Assembly: GCF_006345805.1 (NCBI RefSeq)
Contig: NW_021823655.1
Span: 1 to 21,767 of the forward strand
DNA: 21,767 bases
From: Octopus sinensis
Taxonomy: Eukaryota
Direction: 5' to 3'
The stretch's first letter is position 1. The number at the start of each line of letters is the position of its first letter. The notes below the pieces were generated by a model that saw only the letters and a list, made by a program, of their open reading frames with translations, ran no database searches and was not told where the DNA came from. This document shows, piece by piece, positions 341 to 21,684 of the stretch. The translations under genes and the position numbers were made by a program.

Positions 341-838
341 TTAATGAGAAATGTGATTCCTCATTTCTTTGGAGAGTTGGTTAATGTCTGGGTCGTAAGT
401 CGTTAATTTTAATATGAGGTTAGATTCGACCTCCAAATATTAAATTAATCTTCGACCTCCGAATCTTCAAAATTTAGATTCCAAATTCGAATCTGTAATT
501 TTGTTCCTTAATTTCGATTTTATATAATTCATATGAGAAAAACTTTGTTCACACATATAAGTGGACCCGAATATTGTCAAAATTCCGTATGCAAATTTTT
601 TTAATTCATAATAAGAATCTGGAAGATAATTCCAAGTTTCGAGAATCACATCTTCAAGTTTCTTTTGTATAACATTAATATCATTTTTAATTTTACCAGA
701 CAATGTTTCTGTTTCAAGTAATTCTGAAAGGCGAATAAATTTTGATGCCCATAATTCCTTACATGTCAAGTCCAATAGCTGAATTTCGAACTCAACTGCG
801 TTGATTTCAAATGGCAATAAATTTAAATTGCTGACTTT
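341..838 (-). pseudogene. hAT transposase C-terminal remnant (GTF2IRD2/EPM2AIP1-like, hATC dimerisation region)
   Basis: Translates as ...LKKFAYGILTIFGSTYMCEQSFSHMNYIKSKLRNKITDSNLES. After a small insertion it continues NLILKLTTYDPDINQLSKEMRNHISH*. The FGSTYxCEQxFS motif is typical of this hAT group. Confidence 0.85.
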
Positions 839-839
839 A

Positions 840-980
840 GCACGTAGAGGGTTTATAACGAACGATAGTGTTGTCGAGGGAGCGAGGGAGGTCTTCCAAA
901 AATAGGTTGAAGAGGGCCGGGGATAAGGGGGATCCCTGAGGTACTCCGAGGTATTGCTAGGCATATATCGATGTACCACA
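840..980 (-). pseudogene. Non-LTR retrotransposon reverse-transcriptase fragment embedded in the hAT
   Basis: GC-rich block. A frame not in the ORF track reads GVPQGSPLSPALFNLFLEDLP from 947 downward, matching the conserved QG-x-x-LSP RT motif. Confidence 0.85.
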
Positions 981-1492
981 AAAAATTAATGTTAAACGTG
1001 CAAAAATTTTTTGTTATTAAAAAAACAAAAAAAATAGTTAAAAAATGAAATCATTTATTAAAAAAATAGTTAAAAATTGAAAGAGCCTACCGTAAGAGTT
1101 AAAGAGCCTTCAAAGGCTCGCGAGCCTGCTTTTGCCGACCCCTGATCTGCATCATTAATTAAATTTTTTGTGAAATGATATCAAATATCAAAACATTGGA
1201 TTATATAAATATATTTTTTGTTTTTGTTTTCAAAAACATATTTTTGCAAACAGGATTTTCATCATGCTAAATTTAAAATCAGTTGATCGTACGAGACTAA
1301 ATATTAAAGATGATATTTGGATGTATCTTTAATTTTAATATTCAGAATTAGAAAAATTAGTTCTGATAAACAACACCATCCATTAATTGAATAATTTTTC
1401 CCTTATTTTTTTAAATTGATAAGAGGTACGGAAAATATTGTTTAGATACCAAGAAATAAACGAGGCAAAAATGTTTGAAAACTACTGGTTTA

Positions 1493-1822: not shown

Positions 1823-2617
1823 AAGTTAAAGAAGAGATATACTGTTAAAATTATTGACTTAAACTTTGAATTTTTAAAGTTTTAATTTTGATTTTCTAAA
1901 TTTTTTAGAATGCTAAAATCAAAAAAATAAAAAATTTCTCAAATAAATCAAAGAATTAGTTTTGAACTCACAAAAAATAAAGTCCATGTTATTACAAATT
2001 GAGAGAGATTATTAAGAAAATGCTTTACAATATTGCGTATTCTGCTTATATGAAAATCTCATTCAGAAACGTGACAAATAAATTGCATTTTAAGAGTTCA
2101 CGTGGACAACATGTGAAAAAGCTTAATTTGATCTAAAATAACGAGTCGTGTTTATTGCAGAACATTTCTGAGTTGTTATTAAATACTTGTCAGAATCATA
2201 TGTTGAATAATAATTTCACGACTGAAATTTTGGAGGTTTATATTGAAAAAATAAAAATAATTCAGTAATATTTTTATTTTAAGCCATTTTTTGGATATTT
2301 TTTCAGAAATATATTAATGCATTGTATTAAAAATTGAATACATTGCTTGATTGTAAAAATATCTCAGAACAAAAAATTTTGCAATTTGATTTGCATTTAC
2401 AAGAATATTTGAATATAAATCGTTATAATTAGGGCAATTTAAGTTAAAAAAGTTAAAATATATGAAAATGTGTATTTTGGCTTAAAAGTAAAAATAAAGT
2501 ATTTTTTAAATGAAATAGTTACTTATTAAAGAAAAAAATAAAGTTAAAAAGTTAAAAAAATTTTTTTATAAAGTTAAAAATTTTAACTTTATTTAAAATA
2601 GCGCGTGGGTGTTTAGT

Positions 2618-4079
2618 ATGCCAAGAACTGCAAAAACAATGTATTTTAAGGCAAAAAAAATTGTTATTGAATATCCGCTGGAGTTTTTATTACGAGAGAA
2701 TGGCGAGTTGCAATGTCAACTTTGCTTATGCACAGTCAGGTGTGAGAAAAAGCATTTTGTGAATTCTCACCGAGAATCGAAGAAGCACTCAAATTTATTA
2801 AGTTTTTACAAATTAATATAATTTTTAGAGAATAATTTCTATCAGCCTTGTTTGGACGAGTTACCCAATGATGACTGGTCAATGCAAGTCACTAAAGCAT
2901 TTATTCAATGCGATATACCCTTGCATAAATTGACTATGCCTCCTCTAAAGAATTTATTCAAGAATACTTCTTTGCCTCTTCCTTCCCAATACAAAGCAAG
3001 AATGTGCGTTAAACAATTGAAAACTGAATATATTGTATTATTTCAAGAAAAGTTTAGGTTTATGAATATATAATTTTTTAGAAATCAACTTGTATTCGCC
3101 ATAAGTGACGAGGTCACTATTCGTAGTCAAAAATTTGTTGCAGTTTTAATGGGGATACTTAAAAATCCCGATAAAACTTATTTGATTTCTTTCGTAAAAA
3201 TTGATAAAACTTCTACCAAAGAAACAATTATTCAAATTGTTGACGATACGATTAAATGCGTTTTAATTGAAAGACAAAATTTCCTTCTCCTAATAACAGA
3301 TTCCGCTAAATATATGCTAGCAGGTTTTAATTTAACATATAATTATAGCTGGAAAAGTTCTTAAGCTTTTATATCCAAGGTTATTTCACGTAACTTGTGT
3401 TGCTCATCTGATGCATAATTGTTCAATGAAAATCAGGACTATTTATCCTGAAATTGATTCTCTTATTGCATCAATTCAAGCGGCAATAACAAAAAATAAC
3501 AAGAGAAAACGACTATTTAATGAAATTGGAATTCCACCTCATGTAGTTTTAACTAGATGGGGTACTTGGCTAACTGCTGCATTTTATTATGCAAAAAATT
3601 TAATACATGTGATAAACATTTTCAAAACAATTCCTGATGATGGAATCATTGTTCAGGCTGCAAAAAATAGCCTAAGAGATGAATCTCTAGTAAAAAGCTT
3701 AAGTTCTATTGTTAGAAATTATTCGACAATTCCAGGTAAAACTAGTTTAATAATAGCAGAATTATTGTGCAAATTTGAAAGTTCTCACTCCTCAATAGAG
3801 TTAGCTTACAATGAGCTAAAGAATTTAAAATTTGACGACGAATCAGATATAATTGAAAAATATTTGAATGAACGATTACAAAAAAATGATTTATGTCAAA
3901 TTATAAGAATGACAAATTCATCAATTTCTCCTGAAGAATATTGTATGCTTTTAAAGTGTCAGCCTTCATCCTCTTCCATAGAACGATGCTTCTCTCAAAT
4001 TAAAAACTTTATGAGGGATAACAGAAATTTTAATATTGAAAATATAGAGAATTATGTTATATGTTTGTATAATAAATGA
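2618..4079 (+). CDS. hAT transposase with CGGBP1-like N-terminal zinc finger; introns 2802-2828, 3058-3081, 3324-3348 and a candidate at 3736-3756/3759; 461 aa (453-454 aa if the fourth intron is spliced)
   Basis: The spliced ORF is uninterrupted. It contains CQLC...H...H (zinc finger), AISDEVT (D), LITDSAKYMLAAGK (D), VTCVAH (CxxH), TRWGTW and SSIERCFS (E). 1462-76 = 1386 nt = 462 codons. Confidence 0.85.
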
Positions 4080-4348
4080 TTCTTAAGTTAAAATTTGTTA
4101 GGTTAAAATTTTTGTTTTATAGGTTAAAATTTGGTTATTTTTAGGTTAAAAAGTTAAAATTTTTAGGTTAAAAAATCGAAGTTTTTAGGTTAAAAAAAAA
4201 TTGCCCTAATAATAAATGATTCTTAAGTTAAAATTTGTTAGGTTAAAATTTTTGTTTTATAGGTTAAAATTTGGTTATTTTTAGGTTAAAAAGTTAAAAT
4301 TTTTAGGTTAAAAAATCGAAGTTTTTAGGTTAAAAAAAAATTGCCCTA
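4069..4348 (+). repeat. Exact 140-bp tandem duplication of the hAT right end, including the TIR
   Basis: 4069-4208 equals 4209-4348; both copies end in AAATTGCCCTA. Confidence 0.9.
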
Positions 4349-6410
4349 GTTATAATAAAAAAAGAAATGTCCATGGTTAAATTCAAAATCAGACCTTTTA
4401 AACTTTTCGATCCGAAAGATAGTTTTCGGAGGCAGGAAATGAATAAATTACTTCATTAAAATAAGTCACGATGAAAAGAAATGATTGTGCCTAATTAAAT
4501 ATTCGGATATTGTCTTTTGAAGAAGTAGATTATTCGGATATTGTTTTTATTTCACGACTGAAAATTTGGAGGTTTATATTGAAAAATAAAAATAATTCAA
4601 CAATATTTTTATTTTAAGCCATTTTTTGGATATTTTTTTCAAAAAGATATTAATACATTGTATTAAAAATTGAATACATTGCTAGATTGTAAATATCTCG
4701 GAACAAAAAATTTTGCAATTTGATTTGTATTTACAGAATATTTGAATATAAATCGTTATAATGAAAAAAGAAATGTCCATGATTAAATTCAAAATCAGAC
4801 CTATTGAACTTTTCGATCCGAAAGATAGTTTTCGGGTGGCAGGAAATGAATAAATTACTTCATTAAAATAAGTCACGATGAAAAGAAATGATTGTGCCTA
4901 ATAAAATATTCGGATATTGTCCTTTGAAGAAGTGGATAAAGGGAAATCAAATTGGATGTTCAAAAAGCCATAACTGGTGATCCTGAAAAATTTGTAACTT
5001 TCATACAACAAAAATATAAAAGACACTAATAATCATTAAGTAATGTTGTTAATGTAATACCACTCAAAAACATCAAAAATAAATTACCAAATTGTCTGAA
5101 AAATAAAATTGGGATGATCAAGTTTAAAAATGGGGATGATATGGATGCAATGAGAAACTTAGCATGCAACAGGGGAGGTTGGATAAGGATTATCAAAAAA
5201 ATCGTTTCAAGTGCCGCACGTGTGGAAATATAACTTTTATGTTTCTACGGCAGTTGCCGATAATAATAATAATAAATAAAATTATAAATAGATCAAATCA
5301 AGAATCGATTTGACAATTGGAATTTAAAAATTTGGTCATTAAAAATATTCATGGAAATGAATGAAAATAATAAATTTTCAAATTTAAAACAAAGGAATAA
5401 TACATATCACATTATGGTGAAAAAAACTCATAACCAACAATTTTTTAATTCATGGAAGGTTCTGAGCAAATATTAATATGCATCAAGTCCTTGAATCGAA
5501 ATAATAATAATTATGAATAAAAAATTAATATATGCAATAAAAGAACATACGAATCGCTGACGTAGTTAATTAAGCAATGTGAATTTATATAGTTTTAGGT
5601 TTACCATTTAATAGCCTAAACTCAATAATATAAATAAATATATAATTTAAGTTTTTTAAATGTGCGTGGAAGAATCATGCTGGTATAAACGAATGTAATA
5701 ATACTATTTTTATGGACTTGACTGTGAAAAGCCTCATTGAGTTGAGATGGTGAATGTGGCCAAAACTATGTCCGGAAGGATGCCCGTGGAAGACGACCTC
5801 TGATTGCTGAGAATTTCAATGTTCAATATTGAGATAATGTTTGAGGTCAAGGATAGCAGTTTGTGTCAATTACTACTACATCGTATTTAAACTCATTTGA
5901 AATATTCTAAAAAAATATCATCAAATAAAATGGTGCTAGCAAGCAATAAGGAAAAATAATAGTTGAGACGCGCATATATAGTAGTAACGTCGTAAAATTC
6001 TTACTTAAATGCACAACACTTTGTGGAATGGGTAAAGTGTATCCCAAAAAATAAAATGACGATTAACCCTTTTATAATAAATTAGCTTTCTGGAATTTCA
6101 ACAAAGTACGAAATGTTAATGATTTGATTACGAAATGTTAACTCAATTTTAGATTGCAGCAATGACAGTTTTCGATATAATGAACGGTTATTCCGAATAT
6201 TTGATTATATAATTCTTCCCCCAACATTTTATTAATTTCAGAGTCAATTGATACATTTCAAGATCAAATAACAATCGGAATACTCTGCATGGGCAAGACA
6301 CACTTCATTTTTATGTGAAAAACAGTTAATTTTAACTAATCGTATAACCAAAAAATGATTTTAGCCTGCAAAGCAGGCAAGAAAAATTATTCTAACGAAA
6401 ATGCGAATCC

Positions 6411-7490: not shown

Positions 7491-8525
7491 CTAGCTCGGC
7501 AGCTCGCTTCGCTCACCGCGACCTAGCTCCTGCGGAGGGCCTGTTTCATCAAACAACTATAAGTTTATGTAGATGTATAAAACTACCTGGTTTAATGTAA
7601 CCCTATTCTATCGCCTGTTGATAAACGATGTTTGTCGTCCGTCCTTCCTTGGCATATATGAATAAATTTTCTCTTCTGCCTACCCTCGAGCATCCCACAT
7701 ACAGCTGTCCATGTGAAAAGCACTCACTCTCTAAAAATAACCCAACTACCTTTAATGACTGTCCCTGGGCCTTGTTTATTATCATCGCAAAACTCATCCT
7801 CAAAGGAAATTGCAGCCTTTTAAATCTAAATGGTAATTCATCAGAAATTATCGGAATTCGTGGAATATAAACATCCTCACCTCTATACTTACCTGTTAAT
7901 ATCGTCGCCTCTATTACGTTAGCCATTAAATTTTGATAACTAACCTCGTTCCGTTGCATAATTTAGGTGGCGCAAGATTTCGTAATAAAACCACTGGAAC
8001 GCCTATCTTTAATTTTAAATGATGATTCGGCATTCCAGAGGATCTAAGGAGTTTAAAAATTCAAACGGATATTCGCAGGCTCTTTCATGGTCCATAATAA
8101 CGTCTACCGATTTATATATTCTTTCTTCTCCAGGGATTTTGATTAATAAATCTAAATTTATATTAAGTACCTCATCATTTAGCGGAGCTAATATAGCCCG
8201 TTGAGGAAGCCAGTCGAAATTCCTGTAGTGTTCTGATAGTTCAGAATATACTGAACTGAATAATTCTTCTGCTGTATTCACATATATACATAATTCTTCC
8301 GGTAGACTGATTTTCTGATCCTGTATATCTGAAGTAATTGCCCCATTTTCAATATCTAAAAGGATATTTGGAAATATGCTATTGACGCCTTGTAAATGTG
8401 CACGTACATTTACATCTAAGCTTACCTTTTTGACGTGTGTCCACAGGTATGACGATTTGAGGCAGGCATTCAATTCATCCGCAGGCGTCCCTCTTTGAAT
8501 AATTGGCAGAGTTTGTCTAAAATCA
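7491..8525 (-). mobile_element. Helitron 3' fragment (Pif1-type helicase C-terminus and CTAG 3' end)
   Basis: Translates as DFRQTLP (motif III) ... RAILAPLN ... LLRNLAPPKLCNGTRL ... RLQFPLRMSFAMIINKAQGQSL ... FSHGQLYVGCSRV, with two frameshifts. The minus strand ends GC-rich imperfect hairpin-CTAG|T at 7491. Confidence 0.92.
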
Positions 8526-8560
8526 ATGTCAAGAAAATAAAAAACTGGGCTCTAACCCCG

Positions 8561-8695
8561 TAGGCGGAAATGCGGTAGGCGGAAATGCGGTAGGCGGAAA
8601 TGCGGCAGGCGAAGATGCGGCAGGCGGAAATGCGGCAGGCGAAGATGCGGCAGGCAGAAATGCGGCAGGCGAAGATGCGGCAGGCAGAGATGCGA
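8561..8695. repeat. 15-bp GC-rich minisatellite, 9 units (YAGGCGRARATGCGG)
   Basis: Units start every 15 bp from 8561 to 8681. Central variants GGAAA/AGAAA and GAAGA alternate from unit 3 to unit 8. Confidence 0.95.
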
Positions 8696-8766
8696 CACAC
8701 AAAAAAGATTTAATTAATTACCTTATTAAGCTGACCGTTTTTTCTTCAGCTTCGTTTTCCTTCTTT

Positions 8767-8973
8767 GGTTATCTATTTAAAAATTATTTTGAATAATAAA
8801 AAATATTAGGAAAAAAGAGGCATACAGAAAATAAATTCTATCTTTACGAAAAACTTCTTTTCTTAAGGTCGTCTTCCCTCCTTCGGTTATCTATTGAAAA
8901 AATTATTTTGAATAATAAAAAAGTTTAGGAAAAGAGGCATACAGAAAATAAATTCTAGCTTTACGAAAAACTT
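8767..8973. repeat. Imperfect direct repeat, about 90 bp of homology at a 118-bp period
   Basis: GGTTATCTATT...TACGAAAAACTT occurs at 8767-8856 and 8885-8973. Confidence 0.85.
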
Positions 8974-9439: not shown

Positions 9440-10526
9440 AGGTTTTAATGGACCTCATCATGAATGTCGAGGACATTAACGTTGTTCATTTTAATCAAAT
9501 GCAGAAAATAATTTTTTGATTTTTTGGCGGGAAGGTTTCAAGGACCTCATCATGTAAGTCGAGGACATCGTAGTTGTTCATTTTAACCAAAATGCAGAAA
9601 ATTTTTTTTAATTTTTTTTGGGGGAAGGTTTTAAGGACCCCATCATGTAAGTCGAGGACTTCGTAGTTGTTCATTTTAACTAAACTGCAGAAAATTTTTT
9701 TTAATTTTTTTTGGGGGGGAAGGTTTTAAGGACCTCATCATGTAAGTCGAGGACATCGTAGTTGTTCATTTTAACCAAAATGCAGAAAATTTTTTTTAAT
9801 TTTGTTTGGGGGGGAAGGTTTTAAGGACCTCATCATGTAAGTCGAGGACATCGTAGTTGTTCATTTTAACCAAAATGCAGAAAATTTTTTTTAATTTTTT
9901 TGGGGGGAAGTTTTAAGGACCTCATCATGTAAGTCGAGGACATCGTAGTTGTTCATTTTAACCAAAATGCAGAAAATTTTTTTTAATTTTTTTGGGGGGG
10001 AAGGTTTTAAGGACCCCATCATGTAAGTCGAGGACATCGTAGTTGTTCATTTTAACCAAAATGCAGAAAATTTTTTTTAATTTTTTTTGGGGGGAAGGTT
10101 TTAAGGACCTCATCATGTAAGTCGAGGACATCGTAGTTGTTCATTTTAACCAAAATGCAGAAAATTTTTTTTTAATTTTTTTGGGGGGAAGGTTTTAAGG
10201 ATCTCATCATGTAAGTCGAGGACATCGTAGGGTGGAAGATTCTTGGAGGAGTTCATGATTTTAAGCTTGTTCCCCATTATTGGCTAATTATAAGGGGGAA
10301 AGATTTTGACAATTTATCTGTACTTTGCCAATTTGAAGTTGGTGTGCACACACAGACAGACAGACAGACAGACACACACCATACCATTTTTTTTTTTTTT
10401 TTTTTTTTGGTGCCTAATCAATTTATACAAACAAGACAAAAATTACAGATAGCTAAGTTAGTTAAAGGCCTCACGAGACACCCGACCAGCCGCGCGAATG
10501 GCGAAGACGATTTTATTATTAAGATT
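9440..10526 (-). repeat. Microsatellite plus ~94-bp satellite array element, copy B (DINE-1/Helentron-associated-like architecture)
   Basis: The GAGGAC anchor recurs at about 9469, 9561, 9654, 9749, 9844, 9936, 10030, 10124 and 10218 (9 units). (AGAC)5 lies at 10354-10373, followed by a long T run. The terminal 17-mer ATTTTATTATTAAGATT is shared with copy A. The family assignment is inferred from architecture only. Confidence 0.8.
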
Positions 10527-12730: not shown

Positions 12731-14803
<2,073 letters not shown>

Positions 14804-16699: not shown

Positions 16700-18330
16700 C
16701 AGTGGGGCAAAAAAGTCATGGCACCTTTGCAAATTTTGACTAAATTTAACAATTCTTTGCAAAAAAAAATTAAATACATTACTTTAAAAAATAAATTAGT
16801 AATATAGAACTTTTTAGATAAATTATTAAAAAAACTATTAAAGGAAATTATTAATAGTGCACTAATTAACGATTTATTTTTAAAAGTCAATTTTTTGAGG
16901 GAAAAAAGTAATGGCACGAAATCCAATTAATATTTAGTTGCATTCCCTTTTGCTAGCAGAACTGCCTCCAATCGTTTTTTGTAAGAAAAAATTAGTTTTT
17001 ACATTCTACTTTAGAAATATTTTCCATTCTTCGTAGCAAATTGTTTTTAATTCCTGGATATTTTTGGTTTTCTTAAGCCAACTTTTATTTTGAATATTTT
17101 CCATAAGTTTTCGATGGGATTCAGGTCTGGCGATTGACTTGGCCATTCCAAAACATTTATTTTGTTTTTTTCTAACCATTTAACGGTACTTTGACTTGTG
17201 CTTAGGATCGTTGTCATGCTGGAATGTCCAATGTTGTGTCAAATTTAAGTTCGCGACCGAAGGTAAAAGACATTTTTCCAAAATTTCGCAATATTTAAAA
17301 GAATTCATCATTCCATCAATTACAAATAGTTCACCAACACCTGTTGATGAAAAACAACCCCACAACATGATACTACCTCCCCCGTGCTTTACGGTAGGTA
17401 TGGTGCATTTTGGGATATACGCCTGATTTGATTTGCGCCAAATTGAAAGCGTGTAGTTCAGTCCAAAAAGTTGTATTTTTGATTCGTCCGACCACAAAAT
17501 ATTGTTTATGAATTCATTTTCTTTGTTCAAAAGATTTTTTGCATATTGGATTCGCGCTGAAAGGTGTATTTTCTTTAATAACGGAACTCGACGGGGCCTT
17601 CGCTTATTGATACCTTCTTTGCGTAGTGTAGAAGTGATTGTACGAAGGGACACTGACGTTCCTGTGATTTTTAAATTATCGGCCAATTCTTTTCGAGTTA
17701 TTTTTGGGTTTGAAGTAACTAATCTTTTCATTAATGAAGAAGAACGCAGAGATATCTTTTTTGGAGCACCCGATCTTGGTTTATTAATAACAGTTCCGCG
17801 TTGCTTCCATCGAGTAATAATATTTCGAACAGTACTTTTTGGTAATATCAACAATTTAGAAATCTCTCCATAACTTTTACCGTTTTGGTGGGCAGTTACA
17901 ACTCGTTGTTTTAGGTCCAAAGAATGCTCTTTTCTCATCGACGAGATAATTTTAATAAAAGGCGCGAAAAATAAAGTATTTTATACTAATCGGAATCTAC
18001 TAATCAATTATATTAATAGAACTAAGAATCAATTATTTCAAAGAAAAAACAAGGCACAAAAGATAATCATTTGTATCTTATTGTCAAAAAAATCCATATT
18101 TTTTGATAGTGTCATCACTTTTTTACACATCAAATTTGACGTTTTTCTAAATATGAAGAAAAACAATTATATTTATTTGAAATTCATGAATATAATTAGC
18201 ACGAAATGGGTTCAAAAGAATGCAAGATTTTATTGTATAGCATGATAAACTAAATCGAAAAAGTTATCATTGTAAAAATATATTGAATTAAAAAAAATGA
18301 TAGGTGTGCCATGACTTATTTGCCCCACTG
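16700..18330 (-). mobile_element. Full-length Tc1-family (DD34E) transposon, 1631 bp, inserted in a Merlin transposase gene
   Basis: 25-bp TIRs CAGTGGGGCAAA(A/T)AAGTCATGGCAC with 1 mismatch. TA duplicated at 16698-16699 and 18331-18332. Confidence 0.95.
16927..17938 (-). pseudogene. Tc1 transposase with four apparent 1-bp frameshifts in its last third
   Basis: Paired-like HTH N-terminus, then [26 protein letters not shown], and after a frameshift [15 protein letters not shown]...KGNATKY*. Confidence 0.9.
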
Positions 18331-19418
18331 TATATGTCCGAAGGGACATCAGATGGAATTAGTCTTGGGACCGAAGCTCAATTGGAAATGCTCAAGAGTT
18401 GGTTGTAGAGTCCAATGTTCTATTAAAAAAGGTATAATTTCTCTCAAATAATCTAGATACCTGGTTAGAGAATTGTAGATTGCCATTTGAGGATGTCATC
18501 GCCTACATATACTTATGGAGTTACGATAGGCATACCTTCAAATGGCTTCATCACGAATACAATTGGGGTGAACATACATATGTCGATTGGGCTATGTTTT
18601 TACGTGAAGTCTGTGTGGACGCACTTGTTAAAAGATCTGACGGCAAAATTGGTATTATTAATGTTTATTTCAGGTGGTCCTGGTATGATTGTGGAGGTAG
18701 ACGAGAGTATGTTTTCCAAACGGAAAAACAACTCTGGAAGAGTTTTACCAAAACAGTGGGTCTTCGGTGGTATTTGTCGAGCCACCAAACAGTGTTTTCT
18801 GCAACCAGTCGCGGATAGGAGCAGAGAAACACTGCTCAGTCTAGTAATTCGATATGTCGAGGTGGGAAGCATTATTTATAGTGACTGCTGGAAAGGTTAG
18901 CATTATTTGATTAACATTTAGGGTATTCAACTGATCAATTGGTTGAAAACGGCTACACACACGAAACCGTTAACCATAAGTAAGGAAATATAATATATTC
19001 AGAAAATTCTTTGTGGATCCAACGACGGGAGTGCACACCCAGACAGTAGAACGAATGTGGGGAAGTGCAAAATGCAAGAATATAAAGCTCAAAGAGGAGC
19101 TGTAAGACATCATCTGGGATCTTATTTCGCAGGTTTTTTTAGTTAGTTATTTTTTCAGAATTTATGTGGCGAAAACAAATACAGAACTATAAGGAATCTT
19201 TTGCACAGATTGTAAAGACATAAATTCCTTCTACAGTCCTGGAATTTGGATGCCGCGTACTAAAATGACTAAATTGGTTAAATAAATTTTTAAAATATTT
19301 TAATAACCATTTAAATTATTGATAGAGGGTTATAAATTAAATAATCTATTTTTCACTAAAAAAATTAATTAATTTTAATTATCTTCTAAAAAAACTGCGA
19401 CCACTTCGACAAAAGTAC
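18331..19418 (+). mobile_element. Merlin/IS1016-type element, 3' part (5' arm reduced to 19 bp at 16681-16699, left of the Tc1)
   Basis: The right TIR AAAAAAACTGCGACCACTTCGACAAAAGTAC ends at 19418 and lacks the terminal C. ATCCTTTCAAAATCACGTA at 16681-16699 matches the N-terminal coding sequence of the 10553-11226 copy. Confidence 0.88.
18332..19272 (+). pseudogene. Merlin (DDE_Tnp_IS1595-like) transposase with five tiny introns: 18432-18456, 18652-18673, 18896-18921, 18980-19002, 19133-19158
   Basis: Spliced product: ICPKGH...WKCSRVGC...SIKKDTW...KIGGPGMIVEVDES...WVFGGICR...IIYSDCWKGY...HETVNHKKFFVDPTTGVHTQTVERMW...YFAEFMWR. It is inactivated by the Tc1 insertion, by a 2-nt insertion near 19081 and by 1-nt deletions near the 3' end. 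Confidence 0.88.
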
Positions 19419-19727: not shown

Positions 19728-21005
19728 TCGGTCCTTTCACCTGCCTTATTTAACTTACATCTGTCAAATATCCCGACGAACATAATACTCTACTCTCTCC
19801 TACGCTGATGACTTAATTTTTGCCTCCCGCCACCAAAACATAATCACCGCTTCTGGATTTCTGCAGGAACACATGAACACTCTTTCGTCCTGGCTGAAAT
19901 GCAATCTTCTTCAACCTTCTCCTTCCAAATCATCTGTTACGCTATTCACAACTGACCGCCGTCAGTTCAACTTAGAGCCTAAAACTATTCCTAGACAACA
20001 CTCCACTCCCAGTTGAAAAATCCCCCAAAATCTTGGGTCTGATATTTGATTGCTGTTTGTCCTTCTCGAAACATGTTTCATATATCTGTGGAAAATCCCA
20101 GAAAAAACTCAATGTGCTCCGAGCTATTGCGGGGACTTCATTTGGCAGGATAAGGAAAGTCTAACAACTGTATACAGTGGGCGCAAAAAAAATCCGGTTT
20201 TCTTATTTTTCGAATTTTTCAATATAAATTTTATATTATTTTTTTTTAATTTAGTATCATTTTGAAATGTAAATCGAGTATGTTTTTAATTTTGTACAAG
20301 CAGTTTATTAGAACAACTATGAACTACGCCATCCCTGCTTGGGGTTCTGCTTATCTATTACAAACCTTGAAAAACTTCAGAGAACTCAAAACTCAGCATT
20401 ACGAATTATTACCGGCTGTCTAAAAACGACACCTACCGACCACCTACATTGGAATCGAAAATCCTTCAATCAGTGACCATTTTGAAATGCTCGGGCTGCA
20501 ATTTCTTGACAAATGCCGAACCCTAAATCACCCTGGCTACTTCCTCTGGCACTCCACTAACAACAGGAGAATAGTTCCGACCCTCGCGGACAAAGTCCGC
20601 AAGCTTATACGATCCCCTCCGGACATTAACCAGAAGGGGATTCACGACCTGGTGGCTACGAGGGCAATCAGATGTCTTGGAATAAACAAGCTTCTGGGAC
20701 GCCTTCCGCCGCCAATTAATAAGATCGAATCCTCCCTCTCAAGAGAAGCCCGAGTGAACTTGGCTCGCCTCCGCTGTGGCCACCATACTGGCCTACACGA
20801 TTATCGCATAAAAATCGGTCTTGGAGAAATAACCCCTTCCTATTCCCTCAACGACCTTTTCTCCTGTCCAGGCCCGCCTTCTACTTCCTCGGAACACCGG
20901 ATCACGATCGGGGATCTTTGGGAGCGTCCGACATTGGCCCTAACGTTCTTGTTAGCCACCGGCTTCCTTCAATTGAAGGGGCCGGGGGTAAATAAATAAA
21001 TAAAA
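19728..21005 (+). mobile_element. 5'-truncated, degenerate non-LTR retrotransposon (RT C-terminal half; I-group-like by motif recall)
   Basis: SVLSPALFNL...SYADDL...SPKILGLIFD...LRAIAGTSFG...MNYAIPAW...QNSALRIITGC...LARLRCGHH, with several frameshifts and a (TAAA)n tail at about 20988-21005. Confidence 0.9.
20175..20294. mobile_element. 120-bp insertion in the LINE, flanked by duplicated TA, with one Tc1-like end
   Basis: TA at 20173-20174 and 20295-20296. Removing the insert and one TA restores ACT GTA TAC AAG CAG (TVYKQ). The insert starts CAGTGGGCGCAAAAAA but has no matching right TIR. Confidence 0.7.
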
Positions 21006-21061: not shown

Positions 21062-21684
21062 CAGGGCTGGCCAACCCAAGGCCCGCGGGCCGCATGCGGC
21101 CCGCGATGGAGTTTGGTGCGGCCCGCGAGAGAATTTTGTATGTAGTTAACCTATAAATACATTCAAGATAAATTTTTCTTAAGTTTAATAAATAAAGATA
21201 AATTTTATAAGTTTAATAAATTTTAAAGTTTATCTATTTTTGTAGCTGTTATCAATATGAAGAAAAGGAAAATTTTTGAAGAAAACAGGCAATTCAGCAA
21301 TCATTGGGAGAAGATTACTTTTTTATAATGCATAATTCCAAGCCAACATGTTTAATTTGCAAGGAGAAAGTATCGGTGGTGAAAGAGTACAATGTAAGAA
21401 GACATTATGAAACAAAGCATTCCGAATACGCGAAATTTAGTAAGGAATTGAAAACAAGGAAACTGGATTCGCTTAAATCTGAATTGAGAAATCAGCAAAG
21501 ACTATTAAATTCATCGATACACTTTTCTTCTGATACTGTTAAAGCAAGCTACTCTGTTGCAATGATAATTTCAAAGAGAATGAAATCATTTTCGGATGGA
21601 GAATTCGTAAAAGAGTGTTTGGATGCTGTCGTGAAAGACATTTTGCCAGATAAAACTAAAAACTTTGCAGACGGAAATAATTGA
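21062..21684 (+). mobile_element. hAT transposon 5' end (SPIN/GTF2IRD2-type zinc-finger transposase N-terminus), frameshifted and apparently truncated
   Basis: The left terminus is CAGGGCTGGCCAAC with GGCCCGCG subterminal repeats. ATG at 21257 gives MKKRKIFEENRQFSNHW, then a frameshift, then DYFF...CLICKEKVSVVKEYNVRRHYETKH...KSFSDGEFVKECL. Confidence 0.88.

Follow-up and report, generated by a model that had tools for sequence, protein, structure and literature searches.

A recent hAT transposon whose transposase gene is probably split by ultra-short introns

Positions 2430 to 4348 of a 21,767-nucleotide (nt) stretch of DNA (contig NW_021823655.1, positions 1 to 21,767, of the Octopus sinensis assembly GCF_006345805.1; hereafter the window, by which we mean the whole stretch that was analyzed) very probably hold a recent, autonomous transposon of the hAT superfamily, with an intact transposase gene that is split by four ultra-short spliceosomal introns. 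An earlier, sequence-only reading had proposed that this apparently dead gene is not a pseudogene and that it becomes an intact autonomous hAT gene once three tiny introns of the host's type are removed, and the core of that proposal is supported by the analysis presented here. That the gene is transcribed and spliced, that the element is currently active, and that its introns were gained in a lineage-specific manner are points that we infer from the sequence.

A track of open reading frames (ORFs) presents the transposase gene on the plus strand as four fragments (2609/2618-2821, 2852-3073, 3149-3364 and 3411-4079). Two in-frame TAA stops and one frameshift break it, and all three defects fall within GT..AG segments of 27, 24 and 25 nt, exactly at the coordinates that had been proposed for them. 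With a probable fourth segment included, the gene is organized as follows.

2618 to 2801, plus strand: exon 1, with the start codon and a U1-like C2H2 zinc finger; positions 1-62 of a profile of the protein family
2802 to 2828, plus strand: intron 1, GTTTTTACAAATTAATATAATTTTTAG, 27 nt, phase 1, GT..AG, with an in-frame TAA at 2819-2821
2829 to 3057, plus strand: exon 2, profile positions 72-138, plus K and F
3058 to 3081, plus strand: intron 2, GTTTATGAATATATAATTTTTTAG, 24 nt, phase 2 (an Arg codon split as AG and A), GT..AG, with an in-frame TAA at 3071-3073
3082 to 3323, plus strand: exon 3, with the first and second catalytic Asp (D147, D211); profile positions 141-220
3324 to 3348, plus strand: intron 3, GTTTTAATTTAACATATAATTATAG, 25 nt, phase 1, GT..AG, carrying the frame change
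3349 to 3735, plus strand: exon 4, with the CxxH and RW motifs and the start of the all-helical insertion domain
3736 to 3759, plus strand: probable intron 4, GTAAAACTAGTTTAATAATAGCAG, 24 nt, phase 1, GT..AG, in frame and stop-free when retained
3760 to 4079, plus strand: exon 5, with the catalytic Glu in the motif SIERCFS, the C-terminal hAT-type region and the TGA stop at 4077-4079

Joining 2618-2801, 2829-3057, 3082-3323 and 3349-4079 produces a single ORF of 1386 nt, from the ATG at 2618 to the TGA, that encodes 461 amino acids (aa) and reads KYMLAAGKVLKLLYP across the third junction, where the frameshift had been; this is the product that the sequence-only reading had predicted. Retaining intron 3 shifts the frame into a stop at 3362-3364, and the truncated products that result from retaining intron 1, 2 or 3 are 67, 143 and 232 aa long, respectively. 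Because retention of any of these introns ends in a premature stop, protein output would depend entirely on a spliceosome that can handle introns of 24-27 nt. Introns 1-3 have a G+C content of 11-12.5% (11-25% when all four segments are considered), compared to 30.6% in the transposase exons.

We compared the segments with related proteins, beginning with a search using the spliced protein that returned 39 relatives. Of these, 17 match the query over at least 96% of its length at 28-43% identity; they measure 453-482 aa, and the closest 14 fall between 453 and 461 aa. Junctions 2 and 3 lie within gapless, conserved blocks of the family alignment. A profile built from 28 relatives only, with the window sequence excluded, was matched to the unspliced reading-frame pieces, which it covers at profile positions 1-62, 72-138, 141-220 and 219-456. 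When a few junction-adjacent residues are added, every profile position is accounted for, and the sole long insertion consists of the 8 residues of the fourth segment. Insertions within 2 positions of the junction occur in 0 of 98 relatives at site 1, 0 of 115 at site 3 and 0 of 99 at site 4, and at site 2 they are lacking in 104 of 105 relatives, the remaining one having a single extra residue. Thus the alignment to intron-less homologues, a check that the earlier reading had suggested, identifies the segments as insertions that are absent in about 100 relatives and do not correspond to coding sequence in those homologues. Point mutations can be excluded as the origin of the defects, because excising 24-27 nt would then delete residues of the family, and yet the spliced product aligns without gaps. 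We also simulated the insertion of random AT-rich pieces of the window, 24-27 nt in length, into the coding sequence and scored each for exact GT..AG excision. Such excision was possible in 0.17% of trials (P = 0.0017), and for four insertions the chance is about 1e-11.

The introns proposed at 2802-2828, 3058-3081 and 3324-3348 are all supported, and a fourth is probably present at 3736-3759. Retaining this segment introduces no stop and leaves the frame intact, which explains why it had been overlooked. It encodes an 8-residue insertion, GKTSLIIA, between ...NYSTIP and ELLCKFES..., and this insertion is found in none of the 99 relatives that cover the site. In the AlphaFold model of one relative, P0001, the site maps inside a helix (335-355), and in such a helix-internal position eight extra residues would be expected to be disruptive. 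We therefore regard 3736-3759 as a probable intron and 453 aa as the probable length of the product, with less certainty than for introns 1-3. An alternative acceptor at 3756 would shorten intron 4 to 21 nt.

The claim that the segments resemble introns of the host can be examined in the window itself, which contains a gene for lysyl-tRNA synthetase (LysRS). This single gene served as our reference for host introns.

12735 to 14803, minus strand: LysRS gene with 12 introns of 28, 24, 26, 27, 31, 121, 30, 22, 17, 27, 30 and 28 nt

All of the LysRS introns but one (14085-13965, 121 nt) are 17-31 nt in length, so that the similarity in size noted in the earlier reading is borne out by eleven of twelve introns. 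Together, the twelve have a G+C content of 23.6%, versus 42% in the LysRS coding sequence. The gene model was finished by hand against the human LysRS sequence, and its product was then compared with animal LysRS proteins; models chosen for the fewest introns or the shortest removed length proved wrong and were dropped. In the final model, the intron at 14327-14301 (27 nt) seems to be of the GC-AG type, and that at 13326-13310 is 17 nt long. The product of 553 aa is 58-64% identical to animal LysRS over 91-99% of its length, with matches among arthropod, mollusc, echinoderm and vertebrate enzymes; no cnidarian LysRS was among the matches whose source was named. The LysRS gene ends with TAA where animal LysRS proteins end, the transposase gene ends with TGA, and the exons of both genes are free of in-frame TAA or TAG. 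Because these exons lack such codons and LysRS terminates at TAA, the host uses the standard genetic code, and reassignment of stop codons is excluded. In size, GT..AG ends and AT-rich composition, our sequence comparison supports the view that the transposon segments are introns of the host type.

Introns of this size are rare among animals, for which a lower limit of about 30 nt was long assumed (PMC13644364). According to a 2026 survey, animal introns shorter than 30 nt are known only in myxobolid myxozoans and in Dicyema japonicum (PMC13644364; PMC6736024), and there they are spliced at the RNA level, as supported by long-read cDNA (PMC13644364). The published median intron lengths of these animals, 22-27 nt, belong to the same size class as the introns described here, and the likeness extends to splice signals reduced to little beyond GT and AG, with an A-rich stretch before the AG, and to AT-rich, repeat-rich genomes (PMC13644364; PMC6736024). 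The G+C content is 29.1% in Henneguya salminicola and 36.7% in D. japonicum, whose genome contains 49% repeats (PMC13644364; PMC6736024), and it is about 31% in the window. The published ultra-short introns concern host genes, whereas those described here lie in a transposase gene, and we found no earlier account in the literature of an animal transposase gene with ultra-short introns. The tiny-intron ciliates Paramecium, Blepharisma and Stentor (PMC9942856) offer a further parallel, in that standard gene finders fail on introns shorter than 30 nt, so that genes appear broken and their prediction calls for special measures. The present host differs from these ciliates in being an animal that uses the standard code and in having introns of 17-31 nt, where theirs have a fixed length of 15-16 nt.

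Introns 1-3 also resemble one another. All three begin with GTTT and contain ATATAAT followed by 4-6 T or A residues and then the AG, so that ATATAAT lies 5-7 nt before the AG. Intron 4 has TAATAATAG upstream of its AG. ATATAAT is rare, with only 25 occurrences on the two strands of the window and 0 in the 12 LysRS introns. The shared pattern may reflect a branch-site preference or a common origin of introns 1-3.

The protein encoded by the spliced gene is a member of a compact hAT family of about 455 aa that Pfam recognizes only as DUF659, which was also the only Pfam match of the window protein. In 461-aa numbering, the window protein keeps the invariant residues C33, C36, H51, H57, E148, D211, C235, H238, W289 and E430. 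Among these, C33, C36, H51 and H57 are zinc-finger ligands of the CxxC...H...H type, D147/E148, D211 and E430 correspond to the D-D-E residues, and C235-x-x-H238 is followed by R288-W289, in which R288 is nearly invariant; an S-x-E-R-x-F-S motif is present as well. The zinc finger, D-D-E, CxxH and RW features listed in the sequence-only reading are thus invariant or nearly so in the family alignment, and all are retained in the window protein. BED fingers are common, though not universal, in the hAT superfamily, and the finger of this family is not of that type: zf-BED matched only 1 member (E = 0.4), whereas the N-terminal profile matches the U1-C zinc finger (E = 0.004) and Pfam's zf-U1 was found in 2 members.

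A sequence-profile search of the PDB returned no transposase, only U1-C-like zinc fingers, and we turned to the structure predicted for P0001, which is 42-43% identical to the window protein and aligns with it over its full length. The AlphaFold model of this relative has a predicted local distance difference test score (pLDDT) of 90, and in a fold search its best PDB matches were Hermes transposase structures (E = 6.5e-10 to 4e-7, template modeling score of about 0.5). The model shows hAT fold membership, with a predicted RNase-H-like D-D-E core that carries a helical insertion domain. The window element shares with Hermes, the hAT element of Musca domestica, 8-bp target-site duplications (TSDs), short terminal inverted repeats (TIRs) that begin TAGGG, short subterminal repeats, the CxxH and RW motifs, and a D-D-E triad accompanied by an insertion domain that is entirely helical. 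It differs in the size of its transposase (about 453 aa versus 612) and in its finger, which is of the U1-C/matrin type and not BED. Hermes is not known to contain introns.

The transposase gene lies within an element whose ends and insertion site are preserved, as the earlier reading had noted when it described intact TIRs, a TSD and a nearby empty site; we recovered all of these at 2430-4348 and 4735-4770.

2422 to 2429, no strand assigned: left TSD copy, GTTATAAT, 8 bp; the same octamer stands directly after the element and once at the empty site
2430 to 4348, plus strand: the whole hAT-type DNA transposon, bounded by TIRs and the TSD; its 1919 bp include the duplicated 3' end of 140 bp
2430 to 2440, plus strand: 5' TIR, TAGGGCAATTT, a perfect 11-bp repeat that begins TAGGG and has its exact inverse at 4338-4348
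2443 to 2587, plus strand: 5' subterminal region, with five GTTAAAA repeats and one further copy inverted
4069 to 4208 and 4209 to 4348, plus strand: the 140-bp 3' end in two tandem copies of 100% identity
4349 to 4356, no strand assigned: right TSD copy, GTTATAAT, matching the left octamer and adjoining the outer right end
4735 to 4770, no strand assigned: paralogous empty site, reading AGAATATTTGAATATAAATCGTTATAAT up to the insertion point and GAAAAAAG beyond it, within the unit that follows in a tandem repeat of the host with a period of about 400 bp

Because a right TIR is present in both 140-bp copies (4198-4208 and 4338-4348), the element has two right ends; GTTAAAA occurs seven times in each copy. 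The duplicated unit includes the last 11 nt of the ORF, AATAAA, the subterminal repeats and the right TIR, and the AATAAA, at 4071, overlaps the end of the transposase ORF. GTTAAAA heptamers occur 27 times in the window, and 19 of the 27 lie within the element's two subterminal regions. The TAGGGCAATTT ends fit YARNG, the end consensus of hAT elements. Comparable ends are found in relatives: L002 has TAGGGCAAC ends as in the window element and its own 8-bp TSD, GTAATGAG, and a TAGGGCAA end is conserved in L001-L004, with L001, L003 and L004 ending in AAATTGCCCTA.

The transposon sits within one unit of the host tandem repeat (2213-2429 plus 4349-4548, compared with the neighboring unit at 4549-4937), and identity among these units is 78-100%. 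At the empty site, which holds a single GTTATAAT copy (4755-4762), the left flank is matched at 100% (2402-2429 to 4735-4762) and the right flank at 95% (4349-4429 to 4755-4835). The TIRs, the TSD and the 140-bp duplication are all perfect, whereas the host repeat units have diverged by 4-6%, and the paralogous site is empty; these features indicate that the element inserted recently.

Given these features, we propose that the host spliceosome would remove introns of 27, 24, 25 and 24 nt to yield a transposase of 453 aa, or a 461-aa product where the fourth segment is retained. The 453-aa transposase is predicted to bind both the TAGGGCAATTT ends and the GTTAAAA copies of the subterminal regions and to move the element by cut-and-paste, producing 8-bp target duplications. 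The P element of Drosophila, likewise a DNA transposon, has several short introns that must all be spliced out before its protein can be made, and splicing control restricts it to the germline. It belongs to a different superfamily, however, and retention of introns 1-3 in the window element would give just short truncations. The earlier reading had raised the possibility of a regulatory switch of the P-element kind, but nothing in the sequence favors regulated over constitutive splicing or points to a repressor isoform or to tissue specificity.

Introns are also found elsewhere in this family. Among 84 related loci from metagenome contigs, 31 have a single full-length ORF, and in nine relatives (L078, L067, L081, L049, L056, L029, L052, L059 and L017/L031) the ORF is restored once clear GT..AG introns of conventional size, 44-318 nt, are taken out, most of them of the form GTAAGT or GTAAC...YAG. 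On the profile, the window introns lie at 61/62 (phase 1), 140/141 (phase 2), 220/221 (phase 1) and 349/350 (phase 1), and the intron positions of the nine relatives and the four of the window are all different. Since no position is shared, we abandoned the possibility that the tiny introns derive by shortening from those found in the relatives. These differing positions indicate that intron gain recurs in this family and support the reading of the window segments as introns. Lineages also differ in the length of their introns, a pattern that fits a length that follows the host. It is conceivable, though rather unlikely, that the window introns were created de novo at 24-27 nt after the element had entered an animal lineage with ultra-short introns, and that introns 1-3 are perhaps copies of one template. 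A one-template origin may have involved, for example, intron transposition or reverse splicing.

Intron-bearing hAT elements are in themselves well known: Ac of maize has 4 introns, Tol2 of medaka has 3, and the fungal element Restless contains introns as well. Like the window element, these are autonomous hATs whose transposase mRNA needs host splicing before any protein can be made, but their introns are conventional, tens to hundreds of nt long, as opposed to 24-27 nt here. The novelty of our finding is lowered because such elements are already known, and what appears to be new, judging from our literature searches, is the presence of 24-27-nt introns in an animal hAT transposase gene.

We weighed several other explanations for the interrupted gene. 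It could be a dead pseudogene that acquired its stops and its frameshift by ordinary decay, through point mutations or small junk insertions, with GT..AG ends that are coincidental in AT-rich DNA. Rescue of a single stop would indeed be unremarkable, as 13.6% of codons here can be hidden in some frame-preserving GT..AG segment of 18-30 nt, and the window provides a precedent for decay in a Tc1-like transposon (17183-17980, minus strand) that is broken by frameshifts. We nevertheless consider a pseudogene very unlikely, given that the segments are genuine insertions that about 100 relatives lack, that four exact GT..AG units would arise by chance at about 1e-11, and that, segments aside, the 1.36-kb ORF has no defect and keeps all invariant residues. 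Removal could instead occur at the level of DNA, with the window representing the germline version and the segments behaving like the internally eliminated sequences of ciliates, the shortest of which approach 24-27 nt. Developmental DNA rearrangement has reportedly been seen in dicyemids, one of the two animal groups with published ultra-short introns. The segment ends, however, are GT..AG as in the LysRS introns and not TA..TA as in Paramecium, and the host has a standard code, an animal-type LysRS and animal-type transposons. Taken together with the RNA-level splicing of the published myxobolid and Dicyema ultra-short introns, for which there is long-read cDNA (PMC13644364), this makes DNA elimination a highly improbable explanation. 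Translation without any splicing, by reading TAA as Gln, as many ciliates do, along with a programmed frameshift, would suit the observation that both in-frame stops are TAA and that the ORF ends with TGA, a pattern of the ciliate code. We give this idea almost no credence: there is no other in-frame TAA or TAG in the 453 codons of a gene with 69% A+T, Gln is encoded only by CAA and CAG, and the host LysRS terminates at TAA. Read-through would also add 9 and 8 residues that are found in no relative, and a frameshift would remain necessary to pass the 25-nt segment.

It is also possible, though we doubt it, that the introns are real and the element is immobile, being either a fixed and possibly domesticated hAT-derived host gene or a copy with subtle missense damage. 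The element is known from one copy, its activity is only predicted, its 140-bp 3' duplication is unusual, and several introns are more typical of long-resident or host-like genes. On the other hand, TIRs and TSDs do not normally survive domestication, and both are perfect here, the subterminal arrays are intact, and an empty paralogous site lies 400 bp away among repeat units that differ by 4-6%. Our preferred reading, of a recent autonomous hAT with an intact, intron-split transposase gene, must itself be set against several observations that speak against it. PF05699, the hAT dimerization domain, did not match the window protein at E <= 1, and its matches in the family are weak (15 of 18 members, best E = 0.0018). 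The nearest relatives are only 38-43% identical to the window protein, and neither the spliced protein, its fragments nor the host LysRS had a near-identical match in the protein collection, where an exact-sequence look-up of the 222-aa terminal ORF likewise gave no match. The element was analyzed as one copy, within the window. Finally, intron 4, which causes no stop or frameshift and is less AT-rich than the others (25% G+C), could be a genuine 8-residue insertion.

Several other features were observed in the window, which is very repeat-rich. The Tc1/Sleeping-Beauty-like transposase copy at 17183-17980 (minus strand) extends to about 16900 and matches HTH_Tnp_Tc3_2 and HTH_SB; its C-terminal part is reached only via frame changes, and it looks ordinarily decayed, unlike the hAT element. 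Remnants of mobile elements lie at 470-985 (minus), 7606-8551 (minus), 18469-18897 (plus), 19786-20013 (plus) and 21280-21681 (plus), and they include a different hAT C-terminus, two pieces of a PIF1/Helitron-like helicase, an IS1595/ISXO2-like DDE domain, a reverse-transcriptase fragment and an ORF with a Spin-doc-type zinc finger that reaches the window end. Beside the PIF1-like fragment, at 8473-8793, is a short-period repeat, richer in G+C, that reads (GGNAV/AGEDA)n on one strand and (CRISA)n on the other. TTTTAAC recurs at a spacing of about 94 nt (9581, 9674, 9769, 9864, 9956, 10050 and 10144), and 'LDLHDE/GVLKTFPQKKLKKIF' recurs in the ORFs at 9581-10144, suggesting that this is a tandem array with a period of about 94 bp; a related ORF is found at 1423-1650. 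Rfam and tRNA scans of the window gave no matches.

Our finding leaves the general understanding of how transposons or introns work unchanged, and its consequences concern annotation and the origin of introns. In animals with introns shorter than 30 nt, ORF-based or default annotation would score intact transposons and host genes as pseudogenes, and it would thereby underestimate mobile-element activity in reduced parasite genomes. A compact hAT transposase of about 453 aa with defined 11-bp ends may also be of interest as a tool, should it prove active. We found no literature on intron birth in the class of genomes with ultra-short introns, and a family that is intron-free in most hosts and carries lineage-specific introns in others would offer dated, independent events of intron gain. 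If the short introns of the window element did arise de novo, the family, with no introns in most hosts, introns of 44-318 nt in some and introns of 24-27 nt here, would provide a natural record of the way in which ultra-short introns arise and of the rate at which they do so. In that case, its dependence on splicing would also confine the element to hosts that can remove such introns, and would thus act as a barrier to horizontal transfer.

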